In this document: one piece after another, positions 19,656 through 49,700 of the stretch
Layout of the letters: every line of letters begins with the position of its first letter
How positions within the stretch are numbered: the stretch's first letter is position 1
NCBI RefSeq assembly: GCF_037042905.1
Contig: NC_087254.1
Span: 24,614,001 to 24,678,000, forward strand
Direction of reading: 5' to 3'
Origin: Lytechinus pictus
Lineage: Eukaryota
Length of the DNA: 64,000 nucleotides
The notes under the pieces: model-generated
Seen by the model: the letters and a program-made list of their open reading frames with translations, nothing else
Database searches by the model: none
What the model was told of the DNA's origin: nothing
Program-made: the position numbers and the translations under genes

Positions 19656-19686
<31 letters not shown>

Positions 19687-21403
19687 ACCGAGGGGCGACT
19701 GGCAAGTTTTGAACCTATCACCTTTAACATTTCTTAATTCCAACAAATGTCTAGGTCATAGTAATATCTAGTCTTATTAAACAGGTTCCTAAATTTCGGT
19801 ATCTGGGGCCCGATGCATAAAACTTTTTACCTGAGAAAACTCAGGTTGTTTTTACCTGAGTTTTTGACCTGTGTTAAAGTCAATGGCAGAAATCAGACTA
19901 ACCTTAGTTTTCAGTTTTTACCAGAGTTTTCTCAGGTAAAAAGTTTTATGCAACAGGCCCCATGTGTCTCTTGAAAAATGGTCAAACCTGACTCGATGTT
20001 ACAACCCAATACACAAACCAATATCATTTTTTTTATGTTGCTCACCTATAATGTTCTTGCATTCCTATTCTTATCCTAACAGATCCTGTAAGCATATCAT
20101 ACATCGAGTCTAGTGGATTGATGTACTGCGCATACTCTGAGTCAAATAAGATTACAAGACTCCATCTTGGATATCCAAAATGTGAAAAGGAACTAATTAT
20201 GTACACACCAAAACCAAGAGCACTCGCCATTGATAAATCAAGAAGGTTTGCAATAATAAAATATGTATAAAACTGGTGATGGTGTTGTTGCACGGTTGAC
20301 ATTTATTTAATTGAAAATGTTTTGTAACGCAGCTAGAATATTCCACATCGAGATGGAAAGTCAATTAATGTTGATCAAAGAACGAAAGCGTGAACTTGTT
20401 TTCGATTGAAATTTCGATGATATATTTAACTTTTTGTAGAAACGTGTAATACACAACTTAAGAAAAATATCATAGGCATCTTTTAGTCAAGTCATCAGGA
20501 ATCGTGTTTTTGACAAATCCCCAAATTTCAAATCGTCATAATAGAAAAAAGGTGCAGATGACCATCAAGAAAGCTGCTGGGAGAGGCGGTTTGCCCCTGC
20601 TTTATTGGATTCAAAGAAGTTAACAAGGACTTTTCCATAATGCCTAAACAAATCCCATCCATATGCACGTAATATTAACTCAATTAAAAAAAATATGTGT
20701 TTGTTCTTATTCAAATTATATCTATCCAGGTCACTTTACTGGTCACGCGACGGTGGAATTGAAAGAATAGACCTCGTTTCATTAAGGCGACAAACCATCT
20801 ACCACAACCCTGAACTCAGGAACATTACAGGACTTGCTGTTGATTCAGGTAAAGGATGATATTATGGAAGTTTAAAACAAGTTTGAAGAAATAAATTAAA
20901 ATGAGTGATATGAATAATATGAATAAACATTTATTCTGTACGCGATTCCTGTTCATGTGATACCTGTCGGATTATACAGCTTGCAGTCATAATAACCGTA
21001 ACTGTAAATGTCATTTACTTGAAGCCAAAGACAAAAGTACTACCTTTTGATAATATGTTCTCCTTTTTACCAATGTCAGAACCTTCTTTTTCTACCAGGC
21101 TCAACTACAGTCATCGCTTTCCTAGACACTGTTATTCACCAAGTATTCTACATCGACCTCAATGAACCCGACAATGTCGTCGAACTTACCTCGTCTTTTC
21201 CAGCCCTTGACTTCCCCTTTGTGACACAGCTGAGCGTATATGGCCTGGACATGTTTCTCACGACGTCCGGTGATGCAGCCACAGCCGGTGCGAAGCCTGG
21301 CGTCTTCTGCATGATGAACTACACCAAGGACTCTCGTGATTTGCAGTTCACCGCGGTTGATTCGTTAGACGATCCGGTCGGGATATTCATCGGCCAGTTC
21401 TAA
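12807..21403 (+). CDS. Gene A: secreted protein with signal peptide, N-terminal Cys module, Ser/Thr stalk and C-terminal YWTD-like beta-propeller, 437 aa. join(12807..12849,13894..14151,14453..14641,14846..15082,20083..20245,20730..20848,21099..21403)
   Basis: All introns are GT-AG with consistent phases (1,1,1,1,2,1), giving 1314 nt without a stop. Signal MWMLMRMIAMSLLAGLSTVSA. Thr-rich exon 14453-14641. Blade motifs PIGMTI..RVFWTD, PRALAIDKSRRSLYWSRD and ITGLAVDS. Confidence 0.85.
15785..15970. mobile_element. Penelope-like pLTR remnant forming a ~144-bp fold-back with two degenerate minimal hammerhead cores
   Basis: 15785-15848 is the reverse complement of ~15858-15928. Each arm carries an A-rich core, a ggtc-tat-gacc hairpin and GAAAATTT. 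Flanked by (TA)n. Confidence 0.6.
15981..19655 (-). mobile_element. 5'-truncated, frameshifted CR1/L2-group LINE (APE endonuclease plus RT) in intron 4 of gene A, antisense to it
   Basis: APE motifs HLNIRS, GLTETW, GGGVALY, YRPP, GDFN, IDNIF and SDHFP. RT motifs QFGFR, FLDFSKAFD, GVPQGS and FADD. Tandem 3' tail (TCTAAA)n at 15981-16003. (TA)n on both sides. Confidence 0.9.
19805..19961. mobile_element. Short palindromic MITE
   Basis: TIR GGGGCCCGATGCATAAAACTTTTTACCTGAGAAAACTC and its near-perfect inverse. Confidence 0.8.
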
Positions 21404-23811: not shown

Positions 23812-26800
23812 TTAATCATCTTCTTCTTCTGACTCCTCCTCCCCCTCCTCCATCCCATCTAAATTTGGCATGATGACAGTTTGAATGTGCATGCGGCGTG
23901 GCGCCGTGTATGTGGATGCCACATGCTCTACAAAAGTCGGGGATGCATCCAAATGGTTGACTTCATAAATAGCCGTCGGGTTGATATTCAATAAATATAA
24001 TTTTTGGTTGAAGAAGGCGATATCACTGGGCTCATATGAACTTGTTAGTTCGGTAACTGAGTTCGTATTCAAGTTCAAGATAAATACCTTTTTCCTTCCA
24101 CTGTCGGAAAACAAGAGTCTTTGACCTGCAATGCAGAAAATAAGATACACATACACCTATTAAAATCACCAAGAAACTACGAATATTTTAATCTCGAATT
24201 CAGACATATCAACAGTTACACCGTAACAACTTTCCAATGGCTATAAGGATAATTTTCTGGCAGTTGTTGATGAAGTACTTAGGGCATTTTAGCAATCACT
24301 TCACAGACGCTTTCTATAACGCAGAGAATCTTTTGTCGAAAGCCCTTCATAACAAAGAAGCCTTTGTCCAAAATCAGTGAATCAAAACATCGGTGTCGTA
24401 CTGGACTGTGGACAAATGACATATTTGCAATTTTTTTCGTCCGGTCCGAATCTTCAGACTTCTGTCCCGGTCCACCAATTTTCGACAATGACCTCTAGTC
24501 TGTCCATTGTGATTTGACGGGCATTTTCAAAGGAATTGATGCGTTGTAGAAAGCGTCTGCAAAGTGGGTGCTACAATACGCTTTGGACATCATAGTTACC
24601 AACCAAGTGAATGTCAAAATATTACGTAATGCAATGGAGATCATGTTATACATGTAGAAGAACATGATTTTTGAATACACAAAATACCCATTTGCCCTGC
24701 CTCTCTTCCTCTTTCTCTCTCAAGATGATTGATCTGACCTGAAACATCAACGGAGAGTCCGTCTATATCTGAAAGATCTTCATTGTTGTATACTTCTGCC
24801 TTGCTGCTGCCGTCCTTCCCTGCCTTGTCTATACCTTTGTCACGTGTCCAATAAATGACGCTGATGAATAAATATATATTACAGTTTATGCAACAAGAAG
24901 TCTAGGTTGATTCAATCTTCAAAATAACGGAAGTCATGCTCTTAGTAATAAATACTATACAAAATTCGTATCGAAAAATCTTTAAGCTATCGGAGAAAAT
25001 ATACAGAATATGGAAATGAGGAAGTAACTCCATGAACAAATTTTGATTGACGAGAGATGGATACGTTATTTCTTAAAATGACTATGCATAAATAAAAATA
25101 ATAATGAATAAATAAAAAAAACATCGAATATTTTTTCTAGTTTTTTTTCAAACCTGTTACATTGGTTATCATTCTTTTATAGCCCAATTTATCGTTCCTA
25201 TATATATATATTTCTTTTTATTCATATGAATGTAGAATAAAAAACTTGCTGAATTTGAATAAATGATGGAATGAACAATAAAAAGTTGCCGTCCTATATG
25301 CGATATTATTAAAATAAATACTTACTTTTGCTCGTCGTCAACTACGATAGCCCTGGGATTGTTCCCTGTAGGATTTATAATTACCATCTCAGAGCCTGGG
25401 CTATTGAGGTCGGTAGCAGTTACGACATGGCTACCATCATACGCACAAAAAGCCTGACGAGATGTTTGGGATATAGCTAAGCCTTTAGGGCCTGCAACAA
25501 GTTGACCAACATTGTATTAAAGACGTAATATCATGAAGATAGAAAAAGTAGTATATCTGCATGATCTACGGCACACACTTCCGTGCAGTATTCACAAAGG
25601 TCACATGGCATATTCTTTTTGCAAATGATATTTTGCCTGATTAGTAAATCTAAAGGTAAATGAACTACCTTTTCTTCCATATTCATCATTGAGTTGTCCC
25701 AAATAAGGGAAACACTAAGATGTTAGGGAGCGGAAGGGGTGGGGTGACTCGCAGTTGAAACTATTTTTACATTCACAATTTTCTAATATTCATGAATATT
25801 TACTTAGATGTATTGGGCATTTGTGTTGTGCGGATTCATACATCAAATATTATGTTTATTGCAGTTATTTAATCTTGATTTAATTTTGGACGTTATTCAA
25901 TGTATTTAGGTTTTTTGAAAAGTAAGCTATAGTCACTTCAGAAAAATATGTTTCAGATCTACTGCTCTTCGGGTTTTCTTTGGTGGAAGAGACCTAAAAA
26001 GAGCTCAAAATTGGGTATGGGAGTGCCGTAATGTTCACCAGAAGATCAATCATGAATTTACACCTACACTATTCACACTATCATGCATAAAAGTCATGTC
26101 ATTTTACACACAACTTACCATCATATGTGCTTGTCCTTATCCTCACGGCATTGGAACCATCGATGTCTGCACGCCATAAGCCATTATCTGATATATCAGT
26201 CCAGTAGATCTTTTGTCCCGTTTCATCAAAATCAATATCCCACGGTTCACCTTGAAGAGATATATGAAGTTGGAAAGTGAAGGTCGATAGATCTGCCAGA
26301 TATATCTTTTTCTGTGCATCGGTTATCAGTATTTTGGTGACGAGGTTGCCTGGAACCTGGGTGGCTGTTGTCTGATCATATTGCGTCGGTAGTGGGCTTA
26401 CCGATGTACTTTGAAATGTGGTTGTGACCTCCTCAGTGGATCTTCCTTGGGTCGTCGTGGGTGCGTCAGACGTCTCCTCTTGAGTTGACGTGTTTATTGT
26501 CGTTAAACTTTCTGTTTTCTCTACCAAATGCATAACAAGAAAATCGTCAATAATAGTTAACTTGTTAAAAAGAGATTAATGTCCAGTAGGTTTTAATGAA
26601 ACGGTTCAAACAGTAGTTTCTTTATTTAAAATAGATTCAAAGTACAGCATCTTAAAGAATGTTTGGACTTGTAAAAAAATGTAAATGATCCATCGCGTCA
26701 TGCATTAATTATTTTAGCCCTCTTTTGAATTCACAAAAAGTACCCTGAATACACGCAATCATTTTAAGAAATCATAATACTTGGCTTCATCAAACATGAC

Positions 26801-29800
26801 AAACGCCAATGATACGTAGTGCTTACAGTATCATCAATGTAATATTCACAGATGGAACAGCAAATGGCAGAAGCCAATAAAGCATTTGATGTTCGTAACG
26901 CTACAACTAATGGCGGACGTCAATAATTTTTAAATGATTACTTCATACGATACACACGTTTAGTATGGAACTGCATGTTTCTTACTTCGCCAACATCTTT
27001 GTCCCATTTGTCGAGCGTGGTCAGTCAACAGCTGGTGACCTGCCTCATTTTCACACCACGATCCTGGACACCCTGTCTTGAGACACTCTGTGAGTTAAAT
27101 ACGAAATGGTAATAAAATAGAGGGTGGCCACTTCAGCTTTTTTCTTTGCAGCTACGATAGTCAATTTGAAAATTATGAAAATGATAATAATTATATCACA
27201 ATAATAATATTCGAGTGATTCTCTCCATTTAGCGTAGGTTAAGCTAGATCGTCACAGTTGTCATATATGAACGTATACCCACCGCAACATCTTGTAGACA
27301 GAGATGGATCATTTCCTTAAGAAAGAGGAGAAATATGTATTCCGATTTTTAAAACTGTGAACACGGCTGCAAACATATTCCCTTTTTTTGCATAGAAATT
27401 CGTCTTCTTGTAACATATTATGGAGTTTGACCAGAGTTTTTTTTAAATTGTAGTGGTAATTTGATTTGATATGATTGTTTTCTTTTGCATTCATATAATT
27501 CGTATAATACATTTTTCAATAACACAACAATCATAGTATAATAAAAACTGCTTTAGGCCTACATCATAGAAAAAAGATTTGATAACAGAATATATTTATA
27601 TACAAATATGATCTACTACCAAATTATAACAAAAACACAATTTGAAGGAGAAGCATTGTCATCATAAGCAGATTGCTTGAAATAAAAATGACAACCCTAT
27701 ATTTAAAACTAATTAAAATTAATAATACCTCTATACAGCAGAATTGAAAATATCAGTTCATAATTTGAATAATGAAGATGAAGATGATAAGGATGATGAT
27801 GGTGACACTGTTGAAGATGGGGTGAAGGATGAAGGCCATGGAGATGATGATGATGGTGATGGTGTAAGCTGATGGTGATGATTATGTTGATACAGAAAAT
27901 TTACTTCAAATATTCTGATAATAAGATGGATCTAACGTTAACCTTAAATGAGTAAAGAGACGAGCAATTTTTTATATGCTCTGGTAGAGAGTTCCATAAA
28001 TTGGGACCATGGTGTCTTAAGGCCACCGCACATCTTACGACTGTTCGCGATCCGATTTGGGAACAAATTGAATTTTGCTCATTTTCTGGAAATGTGAATG
28101 GAACATATCATTTAATTTGAGCTTAAAATTAATTGAAAGAATACTTATGTAAACATTTTGAAAGATTGCACGCCTTTAATTTGGAGTATAGGCCAAATTA
28201 GTTTCAAATCGTAGCCAATCGACTGCTATGACGTCATTACGACTAGATATTAAATTCGCTTTTATTCTAAGAAGGATGATAGCATAATCACAGATTTGAA
28301 CATAGGTATTCGTACGATGATTTAGAACATTACACAGTAAGATATTCTAAGTCTCAATATTAGCATCAAATTCTACTACATTTTATTCTGGAATCGGGTC
28401 GCAGACCAATCGTAAGGTGTGCGATCGCCTTTATAGATCCCTGCGCAATAAGCAATTTTGGGTTGATATTGGAAGAGTTACGTGTAGGGTATGAATGAAT
28501 AGATGTGTTCTTATAGTATAAACATTGTGGAATGAATATGGGAGCATGTTGTTTACGTACTTGAACATCAGCAGTAAACTTTGAAGTGAATTTATGTCAA
28601 ATACTGTCAGAGTCTTTAGTTTATGGAATAAAGGGTTTGTGTGTGAGAAACATTACGAATCAGTACAAATTCGAAAGGCCTTTTTCTGTAGTAAGTATAT
28701 TGTATTAATATTAGTTTTTGCACAAGATGCCCAAAATATATTGTATATTGTATATTGTATATTGTCACGAGCGAAACTGCTCTAGTTAACTTATTAATCT
28801 ACAGGCTACTTAACCACCCTGAATAAAAGACCAAAGGATATTCAAGATATAAATGAAGTGATCAATTTAATGTCACAAAATATAATAAGCCATTAACATT
28901 CAATCATTGAGAACATAAGTATATTGGCAAATGGATATTCAATAAATCTTTGCATATCGAAAATCATAAAATTGCATATATACATAAGAGGAGTATAATC
29001 TTCATTGATTGTTTATGGGAAGAGATCGATCTGAAAATAGGCCTTTAAATTATGTTACCGAAAGTCTTAATCGGGTAAATGTGGAGTTCGAAAAACAGAA
29101 GAGATCGACAAACCACGGCGACTACGAAGAGGCGACGATTACGACGAAGAACATGTCGATGATCGATGACAACGAAGAACAATTATGGGACGATGAAAAC
29201 GCGACGCACATCATCAGCGAAGACACGTGTCCTTGAAGAACGAAGAACCATAGTTGAGTTGAAGCTCTATAACTAGGAATAATTATGGTCGAGTCCGACG
29301 ACAGAAGCTTCGGCTGACTGAAGTGAGTCATTCCCCTCTGTGACTCATGACCTTGACATAGCGGGTATAGGTGCTACCCTGACCTACGTACGTTGACTCT
29401 ACATTAACCCTGGGTTGACCCTAGGTTGACAGCCGCCTAAAATAGGAATAGACCAAATACTTAACAGCAAAGACCCTAACAATTTTCTATTCACAAAGAT
29501 GTCAGCTTATCGAAATTAGCTGTCATATTATCAAAGTAAATAAATAACAAGCTTTTATTAGCATGAGCTTTGTGATAGTCAAAAAATACATAACAGTGTG
29601 GAGAAATCTAATGTAATTAACTTTCTCTCTGAATCGTAGATCGATTATATAATTGACTTTAACAGACTTGCAAAATACGTTTCCTTCACCGGAGGTATCA
29701 CATGAAATATTCATAATTTGCAAAACAAGCTTTTTATAAACGACACAGAATTGTACGACTTTAAATAGCAAAATACAACTTTGTTCATTTTAGTAAGGAT

Positions 29801-32800
29801 AATTGTATTCACTTTGAGGAATGGAGTAAGATAAGAAATATATGTAATTTGGTGACAAAATGAGCAGAATATATATATGTAAATCTATCTTTCTTTCCGA
29901 AAACAGACATGCCATATTAAGCATAAGAATTGTATTAACATTAAAACCATATAAACCAAACATTACTTACAATTCGGCATGAGTAGAAAGGAACCTGCCC
30001 GCACTGTGGCACACGCCCTTTTCCTTGGTTAGGAAACACCCCAAAACGGACCTTCCTCTCCAAAATCAGAAGTCAGAGTGAGCTGGCTTGGCTTTTCTTG
30101 CCAGCACACCGAACAGAAATATGTAACACAAAGAGTCTGTAATCCTACACACCTGTTAACCTATAGTCTACTTATTATGACAACCCAGCCTGTTGAAATA
30201 CCAGGCAACCTATCATGCCTATAGTTTAGTTACTAAGGTATGCAGTCCACATCTGTACATTGAGTTTAACAAAAGAGTTTAACAAAACATGGACTTTAAC
30301 AAAAGGGTTATCTAACTTTGAATAAGATCCTACAATTGCTCCCCAATTTCAAGAAAATGCTCTGATTTTCTTCCAGAAATGAGTTTAATCTTATTCAATG
30401 TGTAAAAATATATGATTCGCAGGATAAATGTGAAATATTACTATGCTCACTATATAGCACTTACAGTAATTTACTACCTTGGTTTAGGTGTATAAAGAAT
30501 CGACTTAAATGTTTTCCAAATTTAAATCAAATTAAATCAGTTTTATTTTGCAATACAATTTTCAATCTTTTAAATTGCATGCATTTCAATTTTCGGTGCC
30601 TTTTTTCTTACAACCTACTGAGAAAGTCTGCTCCTACGTTCTCGGAGCCGCGAATTGCCTCAATGCGGTAGCGAAATGGCTGGAGGGAAAGGGCCCACCT
30701 CATTACCCTACTGTTGATACATTTTGCTCGATTGAGGTATATAAGTGGTTTGTGGTCTGTTTCAAGGACAAAGTCTGTACCTTCAAGGTAAACACGGAAT
30801 TTACTTATTCCCCATACCAATCCGAGACATTTACGCTCAATAGTCGAGTAGGCTTGTTCACGCGGAAGAAGCTTGCGACTTGCATAAGCAACAGGCTGTT
30901 TCTCTCCATCATGCTCCTGAAGGAGTACAGCACCAAGTCCAGTAGAAGATGCATCTGTTCTTAAAATGAACTTCTTCTGAACATCAGGCAGACAAAGGAT
31001 GGGGCTCTGTGTGAGACTTTCCTTCAAAACTTTGAAGGCGGCCTCTTCTTCAGCAGTCCATTTCAACTGGTTAGGCTCCCGATTCCTTGTCTTGTCTGTC
31101 ACACGTGATGCTTTCGACGCAAAATTTGGGATAAAGCGCCGGTAATAGCTGGCTAATCCGATGAATGCACGAAGCTGCTTCTTAGTTTCAGGCTTCTTAG
31201 CATCACGGATCTTCTCTACCTTATCCAACATGGGTTGGATCTTACCTGCTTGGACAATATGCCCTAAGAATTCTACCTTTGTGCAACCGAGTTGGCACTT
31301 GCTGGGTCGAGCAGTGAGCCCTGCTGCTCGCAATCTTCCCAAAAGCTCATACAAGGTAGATATGTGTTCTGACCAAGTTGAAGTATGAATGAGAATGTCA
31401 TCCAGATAATTAGTGACGTGTTTCATGTCTGCCAACAAAGACCTCATAACCCTGCTAAAAGTGGCAGGTGCATTGACCAAACCAAACGGCATGACACGAA
31501 ACTGGAACAATCCACTTGGACTCTGAAAAGCTGTCTTTGCTTTGGCATCTTCTGACAAAGGGATTTGCCAGTAGCCTTTGCTTAAGTCCACCTTAGAAAA
31601 GTAACAAGATCCAGAAAGACTAGCGAAGATTTCATCTGCACTTGGCAAAGGTTCTGCATCAAATATTGTGATGCGATTCAGTCTACGGAAATCTATACAG
31701 AAACGATTGCTGCCATCTGATTTCTTTACTATGACTATTGGGGACGAATAAGGTGAATTTGACTTCTCTATCACTCCCATTTTGACCATCTTCTCTGTCT
31801 CATCCTGTATCACAGAACGAAATGCATGTGGGACGGGATATGGTCTTTGTCGAATGGGATCAGCAGAAGTCAAACGAATAGAATGACTGCCTAAAAGTGT
31901 TTTACCTGGCACATCAGTCATCACATCCGGAAAATCCTCAAGTAGAGAACTAACTTCATGTCTCTGTTGAGTCGACAAATCAGAACCAAGTTCAACATCA
32001 TCAATGGTTTCCTGTGCTTCTAACACTGGGATACCTATCCTTATACTACTTGGAATAGAGGGAGTCTCTTGACTATTATCCTCATACCCATCTATAACTG
32101 AAGCTCCAACAACTACCTCTAAAGCTCCAGCAGAAGTGGTATCTTCCTCAGACTTGTCAACAGACGAAGGAACATCAGGCTTTTCTGCCCGGTCAATGTA
32201 TCTCTTTAAGAGATTAGCATGAAAGGTTTTCACTTTTCCGTTCATGTCGAGACGATAATCAAGATCACTCAATTTATGGACTACCTTGAAAGGACCCTTC
32301 CATTGTAACAGCAATTTGTTGTGATCTGATGGAAGGAGAAGCAGAACCTTATCTCCGGCAACAAACTTCCTAACCCTACTCTTGGCATTATAGTATCTCA
32401 TATTTCGCGAGGTTGACTTACTTAACTCTTCCTGTGCTACTTCCATGGTACTCTCAAGCCTATCCTTAAGATCAACAATGTACTGATATGTAGTCTTCAA
32501 TTCAGAATCATTAGCCTGACCACTCCAAAGTTCCTTAAGTATCTCAAGAGGACCTCGAACCTGTCTGCCATACAAGAGTTCGAAAGGCGAGAAGCCAAGT
32601 GAAGCCTGAGGGGCTGCTCTGTACGCAAATAGAACAGGTGCCAAGTACCGGTCCCAATCACTTGGACGGTCTGCACATACTCTCTTCAAGATCTGCTTAA
32701 GTGTTTGATTAAACCTCTCAACTAACCCGTTACAAGCGGGGTGGTAGGGTTTGGTTGTTAATTGTCGAATCGACAATAACCTCCCTACTTCTCACATCAT

Positions 32801-35800
32801 CCCCGAGGTAAATTGGGTACCACGATCCGATAGAATCTCTTGGGGAACCCCAACTCTACAAAAGACCTCTACCATAGCTTCAGCTACTGTACTAGTCTCA
32901 ATGTTTGCCAACGCAACCGCCTCAGGATAGCGGGTTGCATAGTCTACTATCGTGAGAAAATACATGTTCTTTCTAGCAGTTACTGGTTTAATTGGGCCTA
33001 CCAAATCGACAGCTACTCTAAGAAAAGGAACATCTATCACAGGCATCTTGCCTAGAGGGACCTTAGAAATTCTGCCCTTGGGGACTGTTCGCTGACAGAT
33101 ATCGCAAGACCTACAATACCGAGTAATATCTGCTTGGACACCAGGCCAATAGAAATTAGCTAAGACCTTATCAGTGATTTTCTTTACACCTTGGTGACCC
33201 CCCATTATACTCTCATGAGCTAACTTCAACACAGCTTGCCTATAAGGTTTAGGAACAACTAACTGCCTAACTTCATTACCACTAAGCACAGACTTTGGTT
33301 GAAAAACCCTGTGTAACAATCCACCATCAAAGACAAAATATGAACTATGTCCTGAAATTTCACTATCTTTACGATCTTTACTATTCAAACTAGCATACTC
33401 CATTGCTTTTTTTAGCGTTGGGTCAGCCATCTGAGCCTCTTTGATGTCTTCTGAAGAAACATCAGGTATGGCTGACGGAACCTTCAGAGTCGGCCGTGGC
33501 CGCTGAGCTTCACGAACTTGAGCTCGAGTCTGAACTGCCATGTTCACATTGTCATGCGACTTGCATGGTTGACCAGGTTTCCAATTTGGAATTGGATCCT
33601 TCGCTGGTCTCACATTGTCAATTTCACCAAGAACTACGTCAAATACAGGCGTCTCTACGCACAACGCTTCTACCTTGCCAACAAACCAAGGAGAATCAAT
33701 GTTGACCCTAGCTATTGGGAATTTCCTAATTGTTTGGTCAATTAAGACACACCACTTAGACTGACCAGTAAACTGTTCTGGCAATATCAGTGACTTCTTC
33801 ACGATTACACCTGAACAACCTGTATCCCTAAGGACACTCACATCATGTGATTCAAGTTTTCCATTCCTAACTGGAAGCTTATCATGCCAACGTCGCTTAC
33901 AAGTAGCACACATACTAGTGACTTCCCTATGCTTTTCTATTTCTAGAATTTCTTTAGAAGGAGATTCAATATACTCAGCAGAAGACACTAAGAACTCTCC
34001 TAACTCTATACTGTCAGTGATCTGAGTTTCCTGAGACCCAGAAGAACTACAAGTGGGACAACTACCTGATGTCTGTTTCCCTACTAAATCTTGAGTTTCT
34101 CTTAACTGATTCTTTTGGTTCCTACGCTTACCTATTGGTGGCTTCTGAGAACTAACTAAACTCGCGCCTTGGAGTCTAACATTACAATCTTGCGCAAAAT
34201 GACCCATTTTGTTACAAACAAAGCATGGACCCTTCCTACGATGGCCTGATTGTTCACCCTTAACCTTGTTCTCAGCAATTGGCGCATTGGATACCGCAGT
34301 ACTACCCTTAGGTTTACTCTTATGGTTCAAGGGGGAGTTCTTTTTAGGTACTCCATAGTGACCCCCATGTGCCTCAACAAATGTATCTGCCAGACCTGCC
34401 ATTTCATCTGCAGATTTTGGTTTTCTTTCTTTTAGAAATAATGCTAGTGCTTGACCTCCTTTTTCTAAGACTTGCTGCATTAGAAGTAATTGTACAATAC
34501 CATCATATGAGTGCTGAGCTTCAGACAATTCTATCCACGTATCTAAATAATGGGACAACCTCACAACAAACTGACTAGGAGTCTCTCCTACCTCGGGATT
34601 AGAAAATCTGAACTTCTTACGGAAATCATCTGCCGTGAGTTCAAATCTCTTCAACAAAGCATCCTTCAGTGTTGCACAATCTTTTGCCTGATCAGCTGAC
34701 AACCTTGAGTACACATCTAACGACTTACCACGAAGTAAAGCACTAAGACTTATTACGTTCAAATCTATTAAGATATGCATCCATACTATCCTTTCCTTCC
34801 GTGAAAGGAGGGAGTTTAGGGGAAGGGGCCAAAGAACGACGGTCACCGTCACTACTTCCTACTTCAGAACTACTCTGGATACGAGCTAATTCAAGTTTCT
34901 TATCTAATAACATTCCCTCTTGTTTTTGTAACTCGATCTGTTGTTGCCTATCTTCCCTAGCTGCATGTCGCTCATCTCGAGCTAATTTTTCTCTCTGTTC
35001 AACAAATGACAAAAGGTCTTGACCTGTAAAGCCTAACTCTCTCCCTAACTCAAACAAATTTGAATCCATGGTTGATCCTAAACTGTTAGAAATAAATATG
35101 TTAGGTTAACAGACTCTTTGTTTAGAATTTGCTTTCTCTTACCAATATCCCAATGTCACTTGCTTGTGCCAGAAGCTTGCAACCACAGTGCGAGAGTTCC
35201 CGTCTCCTCGAACCGTCACAAATGTCACTGATCTGAAATACCTAATCAGAAGGACAAAACCAATAAACACATCTCATGAACATACATGTTACACTCGCAA
35301 ATTTCAACATCAATAAGCCTTGAAAATTTATAGGAATATGACAGTTAACTATTTCCCTTCAACATGAATAATCCTTGACTTTAACTAGGAATTTTACAGC
35401 TAAGTACCTCCCGGACAAGCCCCCAAATGTCACGAGCGAAACTGCTCTAGTTAACTTATTAATCTACAGGCTACTTAACCACCCTGAATAAAAGACCAAA
35501 GGATATTCAAGATATAAATGAAGTGATCAATTTAATGTCACAAAATATAATAAGCCATTAACATTCAATCATTGAGAACATAAGTATATTGGCAAATGGA
35601 TATTCAATAAATCTTTGCATATCGAAAATCATAAAATTGCATATATACATAAGAGTATAATCTTCATTGATTGTTTATGGGAAGAGATCGATCTGAAAAT
35701 AGGCCTTTAAATTATGTTACCGAAAGTCTTAATCGCGTAAATGTGGAGTTCGAAAAACAGAAGAGATCGACAAACCACGGCGACTACGAAGAGGAGACGA

Positions 35801-38800
35801 TTACGACGAAGAACATGTCGATGATCGATGACAACGAAGAACAATTATGGGACGATGAAAACGCGACGCACATCATCAGCGAAGACACGTGTCCTTGAAG
35901 AACGAAGAACCATAGTTGAGTTGAAGCTCTATAACTAGGAAGAATTATGGTCGAGTCCGACGACAGAAGCTTCGGCTGACTGAAGTGAGTCATTCCCCTC
36001 TGTGACTCATGACCTTGACATAGCGGGTATAGGTGCTACCCTGACCTACGTACGTTGACTCTACATTAACCCTGGGTTGACCCTAGGTTGACAGCCGCCT
36101 AAAATAGGAATAGACCAAATACTTAACAGCAAAGACCCTAACAATTTTCTATTCACAAAGATGTCAGCTTATCGAAATTAGCTGTCATATTATCAAAGTA
36201 AATAAATAACAAGCTTTTATTAGCATGAGCTTTGTGATAGTAAAAAAATACATAACAGTGTGGAGAAATCTAATATAATTAACTTTCTCTCTGAATCGTA
36301 GATCGATTATATAATTGACTTTAACAGACTTGCAAAATACGTTTCCTTCACCGGAGGTATCACATGAAATATTCATAATTTGCAAAACAAGCTTTTTATA
36401 AATGACACAGAATTGTACGACTTTAAATAGCAAAATACAACTTTGTTCATTTTAGTAAAGATAATTGTATTCACTTTGAGGAATGGAGTAAGATAAGAAA
36501 TATATGTAATTTGGTGACAAAATGAGCAGAATATATATATGTAAATCTATCTTTCTTTCCGAAAACAGACATGCCATATTAAGCATTAGAATTGTATTAA
36601 CATTAAAACCATATAAACCAAACATTACTTACAATTCGGCATGAGTAGAAAGGAACCTGCCCGCACTGTGGCACACGCCCTTTTCCTTGGTTAGGAAACA
36701 CCCCAAAACGGACCTTCCTCTCCAAAATCAGAAGTCAGAGTGAGCTGGCTTGGCTTTTCTTGCCAGCACACCGAACAGAAATATGTAACACAAAGAGTCT
36801 GTAATCCTACACACCTGTTAACCTATAGTCTACTTATTATGACAACCCAGCCTGTTGAAATACCAGGCAACCTATCATGCCTATAGTTTAGTTACTAAGG
36901 TATGCAGTCCACATCTGTACATGGAGTTTAACAAAAGAGTTTAACAAAACATGGACTTTAACAAAAGGGTTATCTAACTTTGAATAAGATCCTACAACGA
37001 TGTATAAGGTAATATTTTTTTTCTTTCAATCTTTATTGATCAAAATATAAATTACAATATAAATCAAACAAATCAACAAGCTATTTACATGATTAAACAG
37101 AGCAGCACTTAAGTATGTATAGATTTGTAGAGACAGATCAATAAGACAAATTAAATATCAAATCTCCATTTTTTTTAAATGTACAGGTAATTTACCATTT
37201 TTCTTCTCCAAAAAAATATTCAATATCCATAATGGCTTTGATACGAGCTTTGAATTCCACAATATTGGGGGTTTTGTTATATTAATGAATTGTATAGTGT
37301 GACTTGGGTTGTATGTGGAATTATGTGTTTCATTTTGTACAGTAAACCGACTTTTCTCTAGATAATGGTGGTTATACAACGTATATGTTCGATCCAAGTT
37401 AAATTTTCATCTAAAGTGACACCTATTTTTTTTTCTTTTTAGAGGAATATTGTCTATTGTTATATTATAAGGAAATTCAGCAATATGTGAATTTGTATGT
37501 TTGATATATATATATATATATATACGGGCCGTGTGGTCCAGTGGTTAGAGCATTGGACTCATAATCGCAAGGTTGTGAGTTCGAATCCCAACTCTGCCAT
37601 TGTCTCCACTTTGATAAAAAGGCCCGAGAGTAATATATGTCGTCTATAAGGTCAGCCATTATGACTGATTAACCTAGACGTAAAATGTTTTCTAGGTAAT
37701 TGGTTACATACCAGCTTGGCGTTTACCAGCTAAATGCTGTCCTGCCGAGTTCCTACGGGAATTACCATAAACAGAAACAGTTTGTTTTATCTAAGGATAT
37801 TTTAATAAAAATACTAGTGGAGAGTGACCTGAAAATTTGCATTTCCTTCGACCGGATGTTTCATAACTACAGGACACCGATGAACCAGTGGCATCAGTGA
37901 CGGACAAAGCTGGAAATAAAGAACAAAATATGAAAATATTGATAACTTTTATATCAGCTCACAATAATCTCACGACTGTATATTATTGACCTATCACATG
38001 CATAAAATTTATTTACCATGGCCCTGTTATTCTGCTTATTAAACCCATAATCATATTTCTCAAAAGATGGGACAATTATTCCAGTCTTATCAAATAATTT
38101 TTCTTTGTACATTTATATGTCTGATGACTAGATATCTTGTTAGTGATCTTTTCTCATTTGACTCAGTTTTAATAGATTTCATTGTAATTTCAGCAATGAA
38201 TAACAGTTAAATCTTGCCTGTTTTTTTCACATAGCATTGTTTCGTTTAACGTTTATTTATCGGGCTATTTATACTATAGACCTTTTGTGTTGTTCATTGT
38301 GTATATGTTTATTAAGTTTTTGCCCTATCATTTACATAGAATCTTCATTTATAGTGGTTAATTTTCACATCCCACTGCATTTACTCAAGGGCTTAGTTCA
38401 AGGTAAACATAATGACATTTTAATTAAATAAGATCTCATCACCAATCATGCCAATACTGGAATGAATTCTGGACCTTCCGAAAACTGCATTATTTTTTCT
38501 TTTAAACACAGCATATAAAAAAGGTGAAAATATCATAGATGTCATTCTAAGAAAACATAAGGTTGAAAAAAGTGAAATCGATTCGAGTCGAAGAGAAAAA
38601 AAGTAGAGAATTACGTAGATGTAGGTTACCTATGAGCACGATGAGGAGGACGGTATGATAGAATACACAACATCTTATCTGCTGGGGAGACACAGAGCTC
38701 TGTAAAAATCAGGGATTATATAGTTAAATAAGATGACAAGAATACCAAAATCAATAACACAAGTGATTGTAATACTGTATCATTTATAGATTTAATAGAT

Positions 38801-40249
38801 TTAAATATTTCCTGTCATGCTTCCTAACTTGCATTCTTGGCGGACTTTAGGGGTTTATGCTGGTTAAAGGGGCCAGGTAGAAGCAAATATGCAACCAGTC
38901 TAAACATAAAGCAATGAAACGCTTTAACGTGATGATGCTGTCATCTTAAAGGTCAAGTCCACCCCAGAAAAATACTGACTTGAATAAATAGAGAAAAATC
39001 AAACTAGCATAGTGCTGAAAATTTCATCAAAATCGGATGTAAAATAAGAAAAATATGACATTTTAAAGCTTCGCTTATTTTTCACAAAACAGTGATATGC
39101 ACAACTAGGTGAGTCTGTCGATGATGTCCATCACTCACTATTTCTTTTGTTTTTTATTGTTTGAATTATACAATATTTCATTTTTTTTATAGATTTGACA
39201 ATAAGGACCAACTTGACTGAACCATATAGTATTAAACAATGCTAATTCCACATGTTCAGGGAGGAATTAATCATTGTATCACTTGACAATGAGGAGAAAA
39301 TAAAAAATATTTAATATTTCACATAATAAAATACAAAATACAAAAGAAATAGTGAGTGGATGACGTCATAGTCTCCTCATTTGCATACCAGCCAGGGTGT
39401 GCATATAACTGTTTTGTGAAATTAAGCGAAGCTTTAAAATGTCATAACTTTCTTATTTTACATCCGATTTTGATGAAATTTTTAGTGTTATGCTTGTTGG
39501 ATTTTTCTCTTTTTATTCAAATCAACTTTTTGTTGAGGTGGACTTGTCCTTTAACATTGTGTATAGTGGGTCAGCTATTTTTGACAGGAAATTGTTTCTA
39601 GGCATAAACACCTTTTGTTTGTGCTTACTTCCTACCATGTACACGTATCTGCAAATTAATGTAAAACTACAGGTGGTGACACTACAATTGCTCCTGCGAT
39701 AATTGCTCCGGTCTTGATGTCTCGGAGGGCATCAGGGTTAGAGTTAGGGCTGTAATATAGTTTTTGGTTCAGAATAATGTAAAGATAAGGATTTGGGGTT
39801 TATTTAGCTTTAGATGTAACGTTTTATGTTTAGCTTAACGTGCAAATTTCCCATCGGAGCAATTGTCGTCGGAGCAAAAGTGATGGAACCAGATAGGTTA
39901 TTGATCTTAATTGGATTTTGCATGGTGAAATAAAAACAAACAAACAAAACAAACATGATGGTGACATTTGACATCTTTTTTCATGTTTCATCGACGCATA
40001 TTGCTACGTTAGACATTTATCACTTCAAGCGTTCATTCAGGCGTGTGTGTGCGTAGGCGCGCGAGGGTGGGTGTGTTTGCGTGTAAACAGTTTAGACATA
40101 GTTAGATATATGGAATGAAACAAAGGGAAACGAAGCACAAAAAATGCAGTTATACGGTACAATACAATTGGGCATAATCATCATGATCATGCAATGGTTG
40201 AATCGAAAATCATTAACTGTTTTATACTTACCCACTTTGAAACCTTCAT
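23812..40249 (-). CDS. Gene B: secreted paralog with Cys-loop mini-exon, Thr stalk, YWTD propeller and acidic tail, 390 aa. complement(join(23812..24125,24739..24860,25326..25491,26119..26520,37829..37909,38630..38699,40232..40249))
   Basis: GT-AG introns, phases 0,1,1,1,2,1, 1173 nt open. Signal MKVSKW|SSVSPQQIRCCVFYHTVLLIVLI|ALSVTDA. Motifs PWDIDFDETGQKIYWTD, PRAIVVDDEQNVIYWTRD and LLFSD. The 5' exons are supported by homology of exon 37829-37909 to gene D exon 63830-63913. Confidence 0.8.
24290..24575. repeat. Interspersed palindromic repeat family; other copies at ~15145-15350, ~45480-45750 and, partially, ~57830-57890
   Basis: Shared AAAGCCCTTCATAAC...GCCTTTGTC.AAAATC core and CAGACGCTTTCT / AGAAAGCGTCTG arms. 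Confidence 0.65.
28020..28430. mobile_element. Harbinger-like MITE
   Basis: AGGCCACCGCACATCTTACGA ... TCGTAAGGTGTGCGATCGCCT, with long internal inverted similarity and TTA-like flanks. Confidence 0.7.
28763..30334 (-). repeat. 3' LTR (1572 bp)
   Basis: Differs from the 5' LTR by about 9 substitutions and one 3-nt indel (counted by eye). Confidence 0.95.
30608..35069 (-). pseudogene. Disrupted gag-pol polyprotein (gag, PR, INT, RT, RNase H)
   Basis: ORFs 34743-35069, 32792-34852 and 30608-32776. Frameshifting lesion near 34750. In-frame TGA at 32792-32794 inside the integrase (QFTSGMM*EVGRLLSI). Confidence 0.9.
35408..35425 (-). promoter_or_regulatory. Primer-binding site complementary to tRNA-Pro
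   Basis: TGGGGGCTTGTCCGGGAG, 2 nt inside the 5' LTR; 16/18 match to the canonical tRNA-Pro PBS TGGGGGCTCGTCCGGGAT. Confidence 0.85.
35428..36996 (-). repeat. 5' LTR (1569 bp)
   Basis: Direct repeat of 28763-30334; immediately followed on the minus strand by the PBS. Confidence 0.95.
37014..37470 (-). mobile_element. 3' fragment of an L1/Tx1-like LINE
   Basis: Poly(A) tail and AATAAA on the minus strand. The C-terminal peptide EKKNGKLPVHLKK resembles Tx1/L1 ORF2 ends. The 5' boundary is approximate. Confidence 0.5.
37527..37775 (+). mobile_element. tRNA-derived SINE
   Basis: A box TGGTCCAGTGG, B box GTTCGAATC, tRNA-like head with CAT loop, then a non-tRNA body. Preceded by (TA)n. Confidence 0.75.
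38950..39550. mobile_element. Kolobok-type MITE
   Basis: TTAA TSD; termini AGGTCAAGTCCACC ... GGTGGACTTGTCCT; second copy at 53295-53851. Confidence 0.8.
39672..39890. mobile_element. MITE with CAATTGCTCC subterminal inverted repeats and TTAGGG-like internal repeats
   Basis: caattgctcc ... ggagcaattg arms; internal gggttagagttaggg. Confidence 0.5.
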
Positions 40250-40593
40250 CCCCAGAAACTCATTCATTACTCCTACCATCCCTTCAAAAATGACGGAATT
40301 ATTTAACTATCATAATGTTTATCACATCAGGTCAGTACAAGATGAGAAATGGTCTACTTAAACAGTGATAGTGATGAAACGAGCTAGGCACAGTCCTTCA
40401 CCTTCAAGTGAAAGTGTATAACTTGACTTATTTCCGAGGACAGCTTGCATGCATAAAAGTAACAAAGCATGCATAATAGGTTACGAATTCGATACAATAC
40501 TGGAGCCCACTCCCCGCCTCACATCCATACTACTCTCCCTCTCTCCATACACATGTTTCCTTTTTGCAGTTATCTATCTTGTCTCTCCCTCTT

Positions 40594-40603
<10 letters not shown>

Positions 40604-40655
<52 letters not shown>
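40604..40655. repeat. (CT)n microsatellite between the divergent genes B and C
   Basis: Direct reading of the sequence. Confidence 0.95.
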
Positions 40656-41641
40656 AAATGTCGGTTTGAAATTGGTGTGATCAAATTAATTATATATATG
40701 CTACCTGTATTGATCTATTCTTTTTTTTAATTAAGTGTATTGATACAGACACTAAATGTTGTGGAGCCAAATAGCTTATTTGAGCCCTACATGCTATTTT
40801 TCATTCCCCCTCTCTCTCCGCCCTCCTTTTCTCTGTCTAAAGGTCTATTCTGTATTCGCTCTAATGTCTAATATACCTATACGCTCCTTCTGTTTTATGT
40901 AATTCCCTGTCTCTCCCCCCCCCCCCGCCCTAACACTCTTCTTTCTCTCTGTGTCTCTCTCTTCCCATTTCCCCCTCGATCGGTCATTAGTGATGTCAAT
41001 TTAGATCGCTGTTCGATCAATCCGTACTACATCCATTTACGACGTTATCCACGCATTCTGTATATTGATCCATTAATCGTTTTAGTTATTAAATGAAATA
41101 ATACAGACATTGTCTTATGACATAACTGATGTGAAATCCCTAATAGTAATAGTCAGTTATCCTCGGGAGATACTTGTATCTGTTTTAACACAAAAACTGT
41201 TGAGTATTTTATTTCTCACGTTTATCTTACTTTGTCTTCTCCATCTTTCCCTTTATATTTTTTCCTCCTCCCCTGTTTTTCTTCACCTTCATCTTCAGCC
41301 TCTGTCACACTCACCCTTTATATCTCCATTTTCCCGCCTCCTTCACTTTATTCATCCTTACTAGACTAATTGAGTCACGTGCCCTTTATTCACCAATATA
41401 CATTTAAAAATATCCACTGCCAATTGTTGCAAGCTTTTTCTAATAAAATGCCGAACTCCGAGCTCCGGAAATTACAATATTTTAAAAGAAGCGTGGGATA
41501 TCATGACCTTGTGTCTTCTAGACCTCTTAAATCTAATAGTCATTATCTTCCCATAATTGCTCAATTCTATAATTTCTAAAGACCGCAGTAGTAAGTAGAT
41601 CAGTATATTCAAATCAATTCAGATGCACTGGAGACCTCAAG

Positions 41642-43689
41642 ATGAATGTATACATGGTGAGTTCCATCTTTACCAATTAAGATTCTTATACACTGTAAAA
41701 ATGAAGTGCTAATTTAGCACTAACAGTGCAGTCACTATACAAGCACTGTAAGTGCTAAATTAGCACTTTATTTTTTACACTGTATAAGTTTGGTTTAGTT
41801 TTAGATTTTTTTGGGTCAGATTTTGGCTTTATTGCTGTAACAGATTGAGCATATACCCATCTGATTGTTATTCAACTAATATTTTTCGCTTGCTTTGATG
41901 TCTGTATAAATGTCTGTATCATTGGTATTTACATTAGATGTGTGATGTTTGAGAGCACGTAGTACTCTGTTTGCATTAAGGAACTTTAATCCGATCTTCT
42001 TCATTACATACGAAATACCAGCTTCGTAAACGTTTAATGATAATAATACGATGTTTTGGACTGATAAACTCAACGGGGGTTATATATTGTCTTTGTCTTT
42101 ATATATTTTTTTCATTTTTTTTCTGCTAATCATACCCATGACTGTACTATCAAGAGTGTAATTGTTTTAGAGATGTGCACTTAAATATATGTACCAAGGG
42201 AACAAAACATTCATAATCATTTAGGCAAAGTGTTGAAAATGAATCAGGCATATAATCTTGCATTAAAAGGTATATGCCTATAAAACGATTAAAGCGCGAA
42301 TAGGACATATTGGTGCAAAGAGGGAATTGTATATTGACATTGTGGAAAATCTCGATTATACAATAATAATTGTAAGTCACGGTAATTATTGGTAATTTAC
42401 AGTTACTGATAATGAATTGATGGGTTAGACTGGTACATAAGACTGGAATGAGTGGTTAAAATTCAATCGAGATTTAATCAAATTTTTCTTCTTTTTTAAA
42501 ATATTTACTGTGGAGGGAATATCCGTAGATTACAATGAAGATGGTTTTATTTTACATAAATTTAATTTCATAATGAAATCATGCTGTCTTTTAAGAGTCA
42601 AATGATTTTTGTTTTCTATGTCAGCGGAATGCTTTACTCCATTTCCATCATGAGATGATTTTCCAAAAACCTTTTCACAATCAGAAGAATTTATTCATAT
42701 TCTATATATTTTGTTGATTCAGAAAACAGGAAGACGCTGTTGGACGCTAGTGATCCTTCTCACCATGGTAACGGGTAAATACAACAAACACTCTTCTTTA
42801 ATTTCGGTAATCATTACTTGTGGTCATAATAATGGCAGTCAATATAGGATCGGTTGATTGGCCTCTCCTGAAAACATCTTTACTTCGCTCAATAATGACA
42901 GCGGACTGTTGATTTATTTTTAAAACAAATTGTAAAGAATATGATAAAGACAATAAATTGAGATTGATTCAAATAACTAGCTCATCAAGAATATCAAATG
43001 CGTCAAGGTCATTGATTATGTGACATCATTAATTATCTCGAGCCGATGCAAAATGTGATAATACTCTTTACATGTGTACTATATACAATTAAATATAAAA
43101 GCAATATATTCATCTCTATCTCTCCTCCTCCTCTCTCTCTCATTTTCTATTTCTATCCCCTTATATATATATATATATATATATATAAGGGGATCTGTCT
43201 TGGCTGGACAAATACAATTTTTATAAATAATTTCAAGAATTTCTCATAGGTTTATTATCATTATTATTGCTCTACTCTCCTCCATACATTATTAACAGTT
43301 GATTTCAAGATAGAGTGATTTGGGAGGCCATTGTCACCTCCTTTTATCGTAATTTATTTTCTTGATATATTATAAGCCTTTATCCTTTCTATTCTTGCAT
43401 TTTCATGATTGTGGTGGCGTCATAATAAGTGATTGTTACGTAACAATGATATCCTCACGCGATAATTTTTACAGCCTGCGCCTCCAATATGCTTTTTTTA
43501 TTATTATTATGATGGTGATGCTGTTTTGTGCGCGGTTCCATGACTACCACAATCATGAATGTTATTATTTCAGTTCTTGTCTCTGTGAGCTTTATTGTAT
43601 CCCTGAGGAAGACGTATGTTTAACGTCGAAAATTTGGAATTCAAAATAAACTGTTGGAACAAAGTACAATGCATTACCACTTTGCCTCA

Positions 43690-46700: not shown

Positions 46701-49700
46701 CAAGTCCCACTATTCATATCTGTCCAAGTTCATTACTTATAATACAACATTTTCAGCAGTGCAGTCTTGTAAGGTAGGCCCACTCAAATTATAAAACACT
46801 AATCCACTAGTCTATAATAATCAAGTTAAAAACAGATCGCTTTTCTCTGAAAAAAAAAACATATTAGTCCCTCTACACAAATACAATGGCAGTGTAATTC
46901 ATCTTCTTTATTATTAACAGTCGCCTCAAAACATAGTTTCAAGATTAGCCATTTATAACACACTGTCAATGAGAGATAACAAACATAATTGGTAGATCGC
47001 TCCCCCCTACTGAAGTCCGCATTCAGTAGTTTGTAGTGGTGGGCAAATGAAGGAGGGAATGTTCTAACGCAATTATCTTAAACTATAATAAGTATTCAAA
47101 CAAACCTTAGCTAAAACCAGGGGGTGTTTCTCAAAGAGTTAGGGGTGGCTTGTGGGGTGTTGCATGAAACTTCCAATCGATTGCTAGTCAATTTAGGTCC
47201 CCAAATCAATCATAAGTCTACCAATTAATTGTAAATTTGCAACCGATCGCTGGTCTTCTCCTTGCATCAACAACTATACATTTATTTGTTTTAGATAAAA
47301 TTGATCTATAACCTGTAAATTCACTACTGAAATTTGCGAACGATATTTTCTTGAAACACTCCCTTAGAGAGTATAGTTTACTTCTAAATGGAGAGATTTG
47401 GGACACGTTTTACAAGAAGTTACAATTAATCCGATCAATCGCAACTATGGAAGGCCAGCAACATCAACATCTAAAATACATGTTTGCTCAAAATATATTT
47501 CTAGAAATGACGTATATTCATGCATTCACTGTTTCCTTGACAATTCATTATACTTCTCTTTGTTTTCAAAGGACATTGAGCAACTTTCCTGAAGGAAAAA
47601 TTGTGACATTGATGGATTTCCATATATTTGAAATCAATCGTAACTCTTTGTAAGACGGGGCCCTGGTCACAAGAATAAAAAGGTTGCAGACAGTTCAACG
47701 AAAATGTACATACGATTTTTTTAAAGACAGCATGTAATGGTAGATCATAAGGCAGCTAATGATGAAACTTATTCGAAATAACAATCTCTGATTTTTTTTT
47801 TTTGCAGACTGTGGTGTGAATCCCTGTAGAATAGGATGGTGTGAAGAAACTATAGATGGTTATAAGTGCCACTGCCCCACGGAATACACCGGAACGAATT
47901 GCGAATATAGTATGGACGGTAAGTCATCAATAGAATCAGTGTGATGCCATCATATTCCTCATCACAGGTCTACATTTGGTCATTTTGATAAAGGCTGACT
48001 TTAATTCTATAAATATATGCATGTTTATTTACTAATCCTTAATCTTAAGACTGTTAAAGTAGCCTAAACATTAATAAAAATGAAGTGTTAAATGTAGCAA
48101 GCTTGTAGAGTGACTGCACGTTAGTGGCTGTTTTTTCAGCACTTATAGGGTGCTACAATATGCACCTTTTATGCTTATTGTCGCACACCACGTGTTGTTT
48201 CTAGCACATTTAGCACTACTACACAATTTTCTGAAATTAACACTTTATCGTTTAGAGTGTAAATTTTTCAGATTACCGCAACTTCAAATATTGTTAACGT
48301 CAAAATATTTCGGTTATATTCTCGCGTTACGCTTGAATTACTGAGCACAATGACAATGGTATACGATCCAAGTAAAGGCATTACCAAGTCAATATCCAAT
48401 TGCAGATAAAGATCATTTTTAAAGAAATACGGTGAAGTTCGATCGGTTGATAGCATGTCAGAAAAAAGTTTGTGTTTTGACAGCCATGACTCCACTGCCT
48501 GAAATCAGAGAATATTCCTCGCCGGAAGGATCTTTAGATCCTCAGTCCACGACTACTTTCAACCCAGACCCTTCCTCTACATGGACCTCTGGATCGACAC
48601 AGTCATCAGAGGATCCTCAGATGACGACAGAAGCAACATCAACAGAAGGTCAAGTCTTGAACTCAGTTACTACAGAGCTAGGTATTTGATAGAGACGTTC
48701 TTATATTTATTTTTAAGTTTTATACCTCCTCTTCATCAACGTTAATCAGTAAATACAATACCATCCATGCAGATCTCGCTGTGTCAAAGAAAAATTGTCA
48801 TGACGCAGTGGGAACGCTACAGCGTACTGAGGGCGTAGCGAGAACTTCTATGGACATAAGGCCCCCATCTCACTAGGAAGGCGATCGTGGCGACCATGGC
48901 GATCTGTGTAAATCCCGCAAATCGTAGCAGAATCTTCCTCGAATTCTATTTTTAGCCTGCGAGACGATTGCACTGCAACTTCTATGCGACCGACCTGCGC
49001 TGAAGGCGATGGTAATACGCTGAAAGTACGACGATGCCACTTTCTTGCGACGATTCGAGGCAGATGTGATGCGCTGCTTCTGCGATCAAAGCGATCGTAC
49101 AACGAGGCTCATACGCTAATTAGGACCTCGGTACGGTGGTGCTACGAATGAAGCGATTATGTTACGTTCATGATGGGCTCTTGAAACGATTTCAAGCAAT
49201 CGGCATACTAATCGCGGCACATGGCACATTTTTCAGTCGATTGCCAACCTCCGACCAACATGGATGTCCAGAATTAGGTTGGACTTATACATCTTGGCAT
49301 TCTAAAAGAACATCAGTTAAAAGTTGAATGCGAGGACAGGAGAAGGAGGAGGCCAAAAAGATACAGGGTCCGATCCTGGCTGTCACCTAAGTCATAATAT
49401 ACAATATTTCTAAAATTCATTCAAAAGATGTCGATGAGCCTAATAGTTAATATGAGGGATGCATCCAGAATTTCATAAAAGAGCATAAAAATCTTTGATA
49501 TTCTGTTTATTTTTTTCCACAAAGTTTGTCACTCAAAAATATTTGGTAAATTCCTTTCAAATTTGCTGACAAGAAGTAGTCTACTGATGTGAGAGCACGC
49601 ATAAAAAGGGAGGGGGAGGGGGGCACAATGCCAGAATCTCCCTAAAGATTGCCTTTCCCAATCAATACATTAGTGATCGCATCATTAACAAAATTTGATG

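Follow-up and report, generated by a model that had tools for sequence, protein, structure and literature searches.

In a 64,000-nucleotide stretch of the Lytechinus pictus genome (contig NC_087254.1 of assembly GCF_037042905.1, positions 24,614,001 to 24,678,000 of the forward strand; here called the window, with positions counted from its first letter), two genes of different build, B and D, each carry a short exon that encodes the same small cysteine loop, with an invariant Gly-Arg-Arg-Lys directly in front of the second cysteine. Pattern counts and codon comparisons indicate that this likeness is not due to chance and that purifying selection acts on the peptide rather than on the nucleotides. 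An original prediction for this locus had offered two readings of the loop, one as a cleavage and amidation signal that releases a short peptide and the other as a basic surface that binds a partner. We favor a form of the second, in which the loop would remain uncleaved as a basic N-terminal knob beside an EGF module and act as a docking or capping element, and we give this proposal about an even chance of being right.

The mini-exons and their shared peptide

Direct reading places both mini-exons where they had been predicted (Table 1), phase 1-1 and with good AG/GT signals. The B exon has a polypyrimidine/AG acceptor and a CAG/gtcact donor (borders ...ttccag/CT...TCAG/gtcact, the slash marking the exon edge), the D exon is bordered by ...ttgaag/TA...TCAG/gtgaga, and the split codons contribute two bases at the start and one at the end of each. 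No run of N was met in the window. The two peptides follow C-x(2-3)-ET-[SG]-GRRKC-x-FS; the spacing first claimed, C-x3/4-ET, was wrong, as B reads C-x2-ET and D reads C-x3-ET. The two cysteines (C-x9/10-C) belong to a loop of 10-11 residues in which RRK abuts the second cysteine, and a Pfam search assigned the loop to no family.

The consensus shared by B and D is real. A nucleotide pattern built from GRRKCxFS and the donor (GGN MGN MGN AAR TGY NNN TTY WSN G+GT) matched the 811-Mb genome at two sites only, the B and D exons, and its reversed control matched nowhere; allowing one mismatch added three matches against seven in the control, which is noise. Within the locus, BLASTP of the open segment of B against that of D gave E = 3.5e-4. 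The two exons lie 26 kb apart, their DNA likeness is limited to the 3' half of the exon and is greatest in the last 30 nucleotides beside the donor, and a DNA comparison found the introns around them unalignable. Over the last 11 codons, from ET to FS, six differences are synonymous (GAA/GAG, ACA/ACT, GGT/GGA, CGA/CGT, AGG/CGA and TGC/TGT) and two, S/G and K/Q, are replacements. It is because of these six silent differences and the unalignable introns that we regard the peptide, and not the nucleotide sequence, as the thing kept.

The loop is also found in orthologs of B. In Lytechinus variegatus the mini-exon (L011, ~8240-8336) precedes the annotated gene start by ~1.65 kb and differs from that of L. 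pictus by one V-to-I replacement and two silent changes. An old model of the Strongylocentrotus purpuratus ortholog, P0012 (UPI000222787C), reads SSVSCSYQTISGRRKCTFS within ...DSSSVSCSYQTISGRRKCTFSG... upstream of the orthologous propeller, keeps SGRRKCTFS and matches the window by tblastn at E = 1.4e-6; a search of public proteins of 293-933 residues for the motif at the N terminus returned this S. purpuratus model alone, and paralogs A and C were not recovered. G-R-R-K-C-x-F-S is thus invariant in four of four sequences (L. pictus B and D, L. variegatus B and S. purpuratus B), and the residues before the Gly vary (SYETS, SYQTIS, YDGETG). Conservation of GRR in orthologs, on which the first account had made its reading depend, therefore holds in both B orthologs, and with the spacing corrected the observation of a shared mini-exon is partly confirmed.

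Bodies of genes B and D

Gene D had been presented as the fourth of four paralogs that all join a stalk to a propeller. Its body proved to be of another kind, and only the leader cassette is common to B and D: over the 60 kb that follow the D mini-exon, tblastn with the B protein found no propeller exon. The next in-phase exon, also phase 1-1, lies 3.7 kb downstream, beyond the window (L006, 3634-3771), and is an EGF exon with six cysteines, a PF00008 score of 31.9 bits against a cut-off of 21.5 and Notch EGF matches in PDB; the predicted splice reads ..QFS-A-VLACDSNPC... A two-exon C-type-lectin-like domain follows, and the EGF/lectin unit repeats to give ~7 lectin domains, with EGF and calcium-binding-type EGF exons alternating with the lectin domains and lectin-to-EGF junctions in phase 2. 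W-x-D-K-x-C occurs in seven copies, and units 1-2 carry QPD where the later ones have QPN; one lectin exon taken alone scores 21.8 bits for PF00059 against a cut-off of 22.6. The last lectin domain (...CQILI) is followed at once by the stop, near window coordinate 89985, ~26 kb past the window end. On this exon structure, D is predicted to be a secreted multi-(EGF/C-type-lectin) protein of roughly 1400 amino acids.

The body of B is represented by the NCBI L. pictus protein P0151, named "LRP4-like", which maps exactly onto the window. It contains six YWTD-like repeats (KIYWTD, VIYWTR and others), a Ser/Thr-rich stalk and an acidic tail. Searched with Pfam, B gives Ldl_recept_b (PF00058) at E = 0.0014 and 19.5 bits, below the cut-off of 21, and phmmer with B reaches LRP-like multi-YWTD proteins with E-values to 1e-71. 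Fifteen phmmer representatives proved to be unrelated YWTD-repeat proteins with signal peptides, apparently microbial. A single-sequence AlphaFold model of B was unusable (predicted local distance difference test score of 33). Among the S. purpuratus ortholog models, P0012 and P0152 disagree on the reading frame of the long tandem-repeat stalk (VQRQPKVYQQPKHRLK... in one, NDNPRYTNNPNTDSRY... in the other). One or both must be frame-shifted, and in reality the stalk probably consists of a Thr/Pro-rich repeat longer than that of Lytechinus.

Between the mini-exon and the stalk of B lies an exon, here called exon X, to which the mini-exon is probably spliced. It has an ...aactcacag/AG acceptor and a CGAA/gtaaga donor, and its frame is open back to the acceptor; the frame is open in L. 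variegatus as well, where both changes inside CLKTGCPGSWCENE are silent. The phase-1 donor of the mini-exon fits exon X and would also fit the stalk exon. No other signal-type exon was found between the mini-exon of B or D and its respective partner exon.

The B intron between the mini-exon and exon X is 10.7 kb long by virtue of a complete-looking, 8.2-kb long terminal repeat (LTR) retrotransposon, with gag/pol open reading frames at 34852-30608 and LTRs at 28763-30335 and 35428-36997 (1573 bp). The insertion is recent, since the B locus of L. variegatus lacks the element and its two LTRs are 99.2% identical. It may affect 5' splicing of B.

Table 1. Features of genes B, C and D and of the element inserted in gene B, in window coordinates
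Feature	Positions	Strand	Remarks
Gene B mini-exon	37829-37909	minus	81 nucleotides, phase 1-1; encodes (x)LSVTDATGSSVSCSYETSGRRKCKFS; read directly
Gene D mini-exon	63830-63913	plus	84 nucleotides, phase 1-1; encodes (x)FGLSVSGMSEITCYDGETGGRRKCQFS; read directly
Gene B exon X	26986-27087	minus	102 nucleotides, phase 1-1; reads E-CLKTGCPGSWCENEAGHQLLTDHARQMGQRCWR-K
Gene B exon with Ser/Thr-rich stalk and first YWTD blades	26119-26520	minus	phase-1 acceptor; in frame with mini-exon directly
Gene B remaining propeller exons and acidic tail	23812-25491	minus	last exon, 24125-23812, includes stop
Gene B coding exons in NCBI model	27007-26986, 26520-26119, 25491-25326, 24860-24739, 24125-23812	minus	exact mapping of P0151
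Gene B tentative first coding exon	39890-39974	minus	MSNVTIMFVLFVCFYFTMQNPIKINNLS; phase-1 donor G/GTTCCA; low confidence
LTR retrotransposon	28763-36997	minus	in B intron between mini-exon and exon X
Gene C candidate second exon	42723-42774		KTGRRCWTLVILLTMVT

Readings of the loop

According to the explanation we favor, both mini-exons would be genuine coding leader exons, each supplying the first ~20 residues of its mature protein. The two loop cysteines would pair with each other to close a small disulfide loop displaying E/Q-T-x-G-R-R-K, with the invariant Gly-Arg-Arg-Lys before the second cysteine and x-Phe-Ser after it; we infer this pairing because the neighboring modules have even numbers of cysteines of their own, six in the D EGF exon and four in exon X. 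In phase 1 the loop would be joined in D to the EGF exon and in B to the cysteine-rich, EGF-like exon X; the predicted junctions of B are ..KFS-E-CLK.. (27087) or ..KFS-E-KTES.. (26520), with ...AAATGCAAATTTTCAG on the upstream side. One cassette would head two bodies, the Ser/Thr-rich stalk and YWTD propeller of B and the ~7 EGF/C-type-lectin units of D, and for this reason we propose that it was copied inside the cluster by duplication or by shuffling of phase-1 exons. Left uncleaved, the exposed basic knob would serve as a structural cap or as a dock for an acidic or sulfated partner.

The pattern of conservation bears on the choice between a folded motif and a processing site, and it favors the former because the invariant block crosses the supposed cleavage point into C-x-F-S. 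The basic-loop reading of the original prediction, with its acidic or sulfated partner, fits this pattern and is preferred over the peptide reading, so that the interpretation overall is partly supported. With respect to the Cardin-Weintraub patterns XBBBXXBX and XBBXBX, the loop offers the BBB core (RRK) only; the flanking residue is basic in B (K), Q in D and T in S. purpuratus. A Ser-Gly glycosaminoglycan attachment site was rejected as the conserved function, as it is present in the B orthologs but D has Gly-Gly.

Several observations weigh against this reading. The mini-exon is missing from the NCBI models of B in two species: those of L. pictus and L. variegatus (XP_041473044.1) begin MGQRCWRKK..., without a signal peptide. 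The omission is weak counter-evidence, however, because these models start at an internal Met (position 27007, inside exon X, in L. pictus) and are 5'-truncated, as is the NCBI model of the L. variegatus gene A ortholog, which begins at the first Met of the stalk exon and likewise has no signal peptide. The truncated B model has a length of at least 341 amino acids and the protein of at least 400. The EGF nature of exon X is also only suggestive. The C-x4-C-x4-C-E spacing of its four cysteines resembles that of an EGF exon in gene C (CGVNPCRIGWCEE...), with p = 0.11 in a shuffle test, and exon X has no Pfam match.

A further point is that a candidate search and comparison with L. variegatus established a signal-peptide exon for neither gene, so that the original placement of the loop right behind a signal cleavage is presumptive. 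Upstream of the B mini-exon, a candidate at 40474-40402 (MHALLLLCMQAVLG...) was rejected, as L. variegatus has kept neither its donor nor its frame. Of the ATG-led hydrophobic phase-1 exons upstream, only the tentative first coding exon at 39974-39890 retains its ATG, frame and GT in L. variegatus, and the corresponding stretch of S. purpuratus P0012 is EQPIKINKMS; against this exon stand a weak donor at the edge of a dispersed repeat and a lack of RNA reads. For D, no exon 1 was found upstream of the mini-exon, and the start proposed earlier, at ~60023-60224, was discarded, since the long open reading frame begins with GTG and a nearby ATG runs into a stop.

The last of these points comes from RNA. 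Reads of runs X1 and X9-X11 were placed on 36760-42300, a region upstream of the B 3' exons. Three RNA runs depleted of ribosomal RNA, with ~6% of each read, had zero depth at 37870-38794 and 39905-41569, and there was none on the B mini-exon or on any candidate upstream exon. Run X1, whose depth in unique DNA is low and scattered, looks like low-coverage DNA; its word share of 0.25 does not represent expression. The original prediction had taken presence in transcripts as a touchstone, and the reads speak to this in part: the B exon has zero depth in the three runs over this region. Depth at 37500-37780 and 38946-39900 belongs to dispersed repeats, and at 37535-37780 and 38946-39900 these draw hundreds of RNA reads, with 90-95% likeness, from copies elsewhere. 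The block at 38946-39536 is an insertion specific to L. pictus in comparison with L. variegatus, and it has a relative in a gene C intron (~53300-53870).

One alternative is that the 5' exons are relics, or are rarely used and lie outside the main mRNAs, with B transcribed from a start at exon X and the LTR element perhaps uncoupling the upstream exons in L. pictus. The start of both Lytechinus B models in exon X, the absence of RNA reads from the B exon and upstream region in the three runs and the recent date of the insertion are all consistent with this view. However, a protein with a mucin stalk and a YWTD propeller would then be made without a signal peptide, which is implausible; the gene A model is truncated in the same way; and L. 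variegatus has the same NCBI model although it lacks the element. The splice sites are kept and the peptide is under purifying selection in two paralogs and across three species, which also argues against relics; we consider this alternative unlikely.

A bolder extension of the uncleaved loop would make the cassette of signal and loop, possibly with the EGF module, a portable "address tag" that directs both proteins, although structurally unrelated, to one partner, matrix or secretory compartment; the loop would then be a small, new module for targeting or docking that is specific to sea urchins. We regard this as doubtful, somewhat more so than the relic exons.

Convertase nicking after RR or RRK without amidation would leave a two-chain N terminus held by the disulfide or would act as an activation-type cleavage. 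Dibasic sites are the usual targets of convertases, and the basic triplet is invariant in four of four sequences. The context is nonetheless poor: [ST/G]-G-R-R-K-C departs from the furin pattern R-X-[K/R]-R in having no P1 Arg together with a P4 Arg, the loop cysteine would be P1' or P2', and the C-x-F-S after the site is as conserved as the site itself. Such nicking is improbable.

The most striking suggestion was that GRR is a prohormone-convertase and PAM signal from which ...CSYETS-amide or ...CYDGETG-amide would arise, still tethered by a disulfide to the body of the precursor. A Gly with a basic pair after it forms the canonical amidation signal, which echinoderm neuropeptide precursors also use (PMC4772807), and the G-R-R tripeptide is present in all four sequences. 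The resemblance ends there. Echinoderm amidated-peptide precursors are small and dedicated, roughly 100-160 residues (PMC4772807), whereas B and D are large, nonpeptidergic, mosaic matrix-type proteins of at least 400 and roughly 1400 residues, each with a single site, set within a cysteine loop. The would-be amidated C terminus varies (S, IS, G), and the downstream K-C-x-F-S is invariant. Of the proposed peptide-plus-propeller precursor, the GRR survives in four sequences and the propeller is missing from D, which weakens the idea; as a convertase and amidation site the Gly-Arg-Arg is unsupported, and we find this reading scarcely credible. Equally remote is constraint on the nucleic acid, in which a splicing enhancer or a regulatory element would account for the conserved 3' half of the exon. 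Identity does cluster in the last 30 nucleotides beside the donor, but six of the 11 aligned codons differ at synonymous positions only, including AGG versus CGA for Arg.

Set against known systems, an uncleaved loop at the head of B and D most resembles phase 1-1 mosaic extracellular proteins, in which EGF, lectin and LDL-receptor modules are shuffled. The mini-exons, the D EGF exons and exon X are all phase 1-1, and one 5' cassette heads different bodies in neighboring genes; what differs is that the shuffled unit is a 20-residue loop without a Pfam family, present only twice in the genome. Recombination of phase-1 exons into different extracellular mosaics within one cluster is ordinary for sea urchins. 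B is like the YWTD (class B) propellers of the LDL-receptor group in its six repeats and its phmmer matches to LRP-like proteins. It differs in lacking LDL-A repeats and a membrane span, in having one degenerate EGF-like exon, in the mucin-like stalk that separates this exon from the propeller and in its Pfam score below cut-off.

D shares with the EGF and C-type-lectin mosaics (selectins, lecticans and the thrombomodulin group) the alternation of both domains and the WxD and QPD/QPN motifs, but it lacks a membrane span, has ~7 lectin units and stops directly after the last of them. The lectin tail and EGF of E-selectin can be aligned over the loop and EGF. An origin of the loop as a relic of the C-terminal strand of a C-type lectin was nevertheless rejected, since exon phases differ and shuffle z values of -1 to 1.7 give no detectable sign of descent from a lectin tail.

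Should the exon prove to be in use, the public models of B, in which a protein of secretory type now lacks a signal peptide, would be corrected, and the multi-lectin gene D would share its leader with the propeller family, a clean small example of a 5' cassette shared through exon shuffling. The basic loop would become a testable candidate docking motif. No long-standing question is opened by these results, and the peptide-precursor idea, which would have been striking, is unlikely.

Neighboring genes and elements

Gene C, which supplied the EGF exon compared with exon X, does not seem to have a loop exon. Its start, MNVYM, is placed at 41642-41656 by homology to exon 1 of the L. variegatus model. 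Its probable arrangement is MNVYM, then KTGRRCWTLVILLTMVT, then D-CGVNPC..., a two-exon signal peptide that leads directly to the EGF exon at 47808-47941. The n-region of gene C contains T-G-R-R-C, faintly like S-G-R-R-K-C of the loop and G-Q-R-C-W of exon X, a likeness that may be chance.

No tRNA-like gene was found in the repeat adjoining the B mini-exon. The 5'-truncated public models of the A and B orthologs concern 12800-21400 and 23812-27007 of the window and L011 of L. variegatus. Remnants of a non-LTR retrotransposon, with reverse-transcriptase and endonuclease-like open reading frames on the minus strand, lie at 16500-19540 in a gene A intron.

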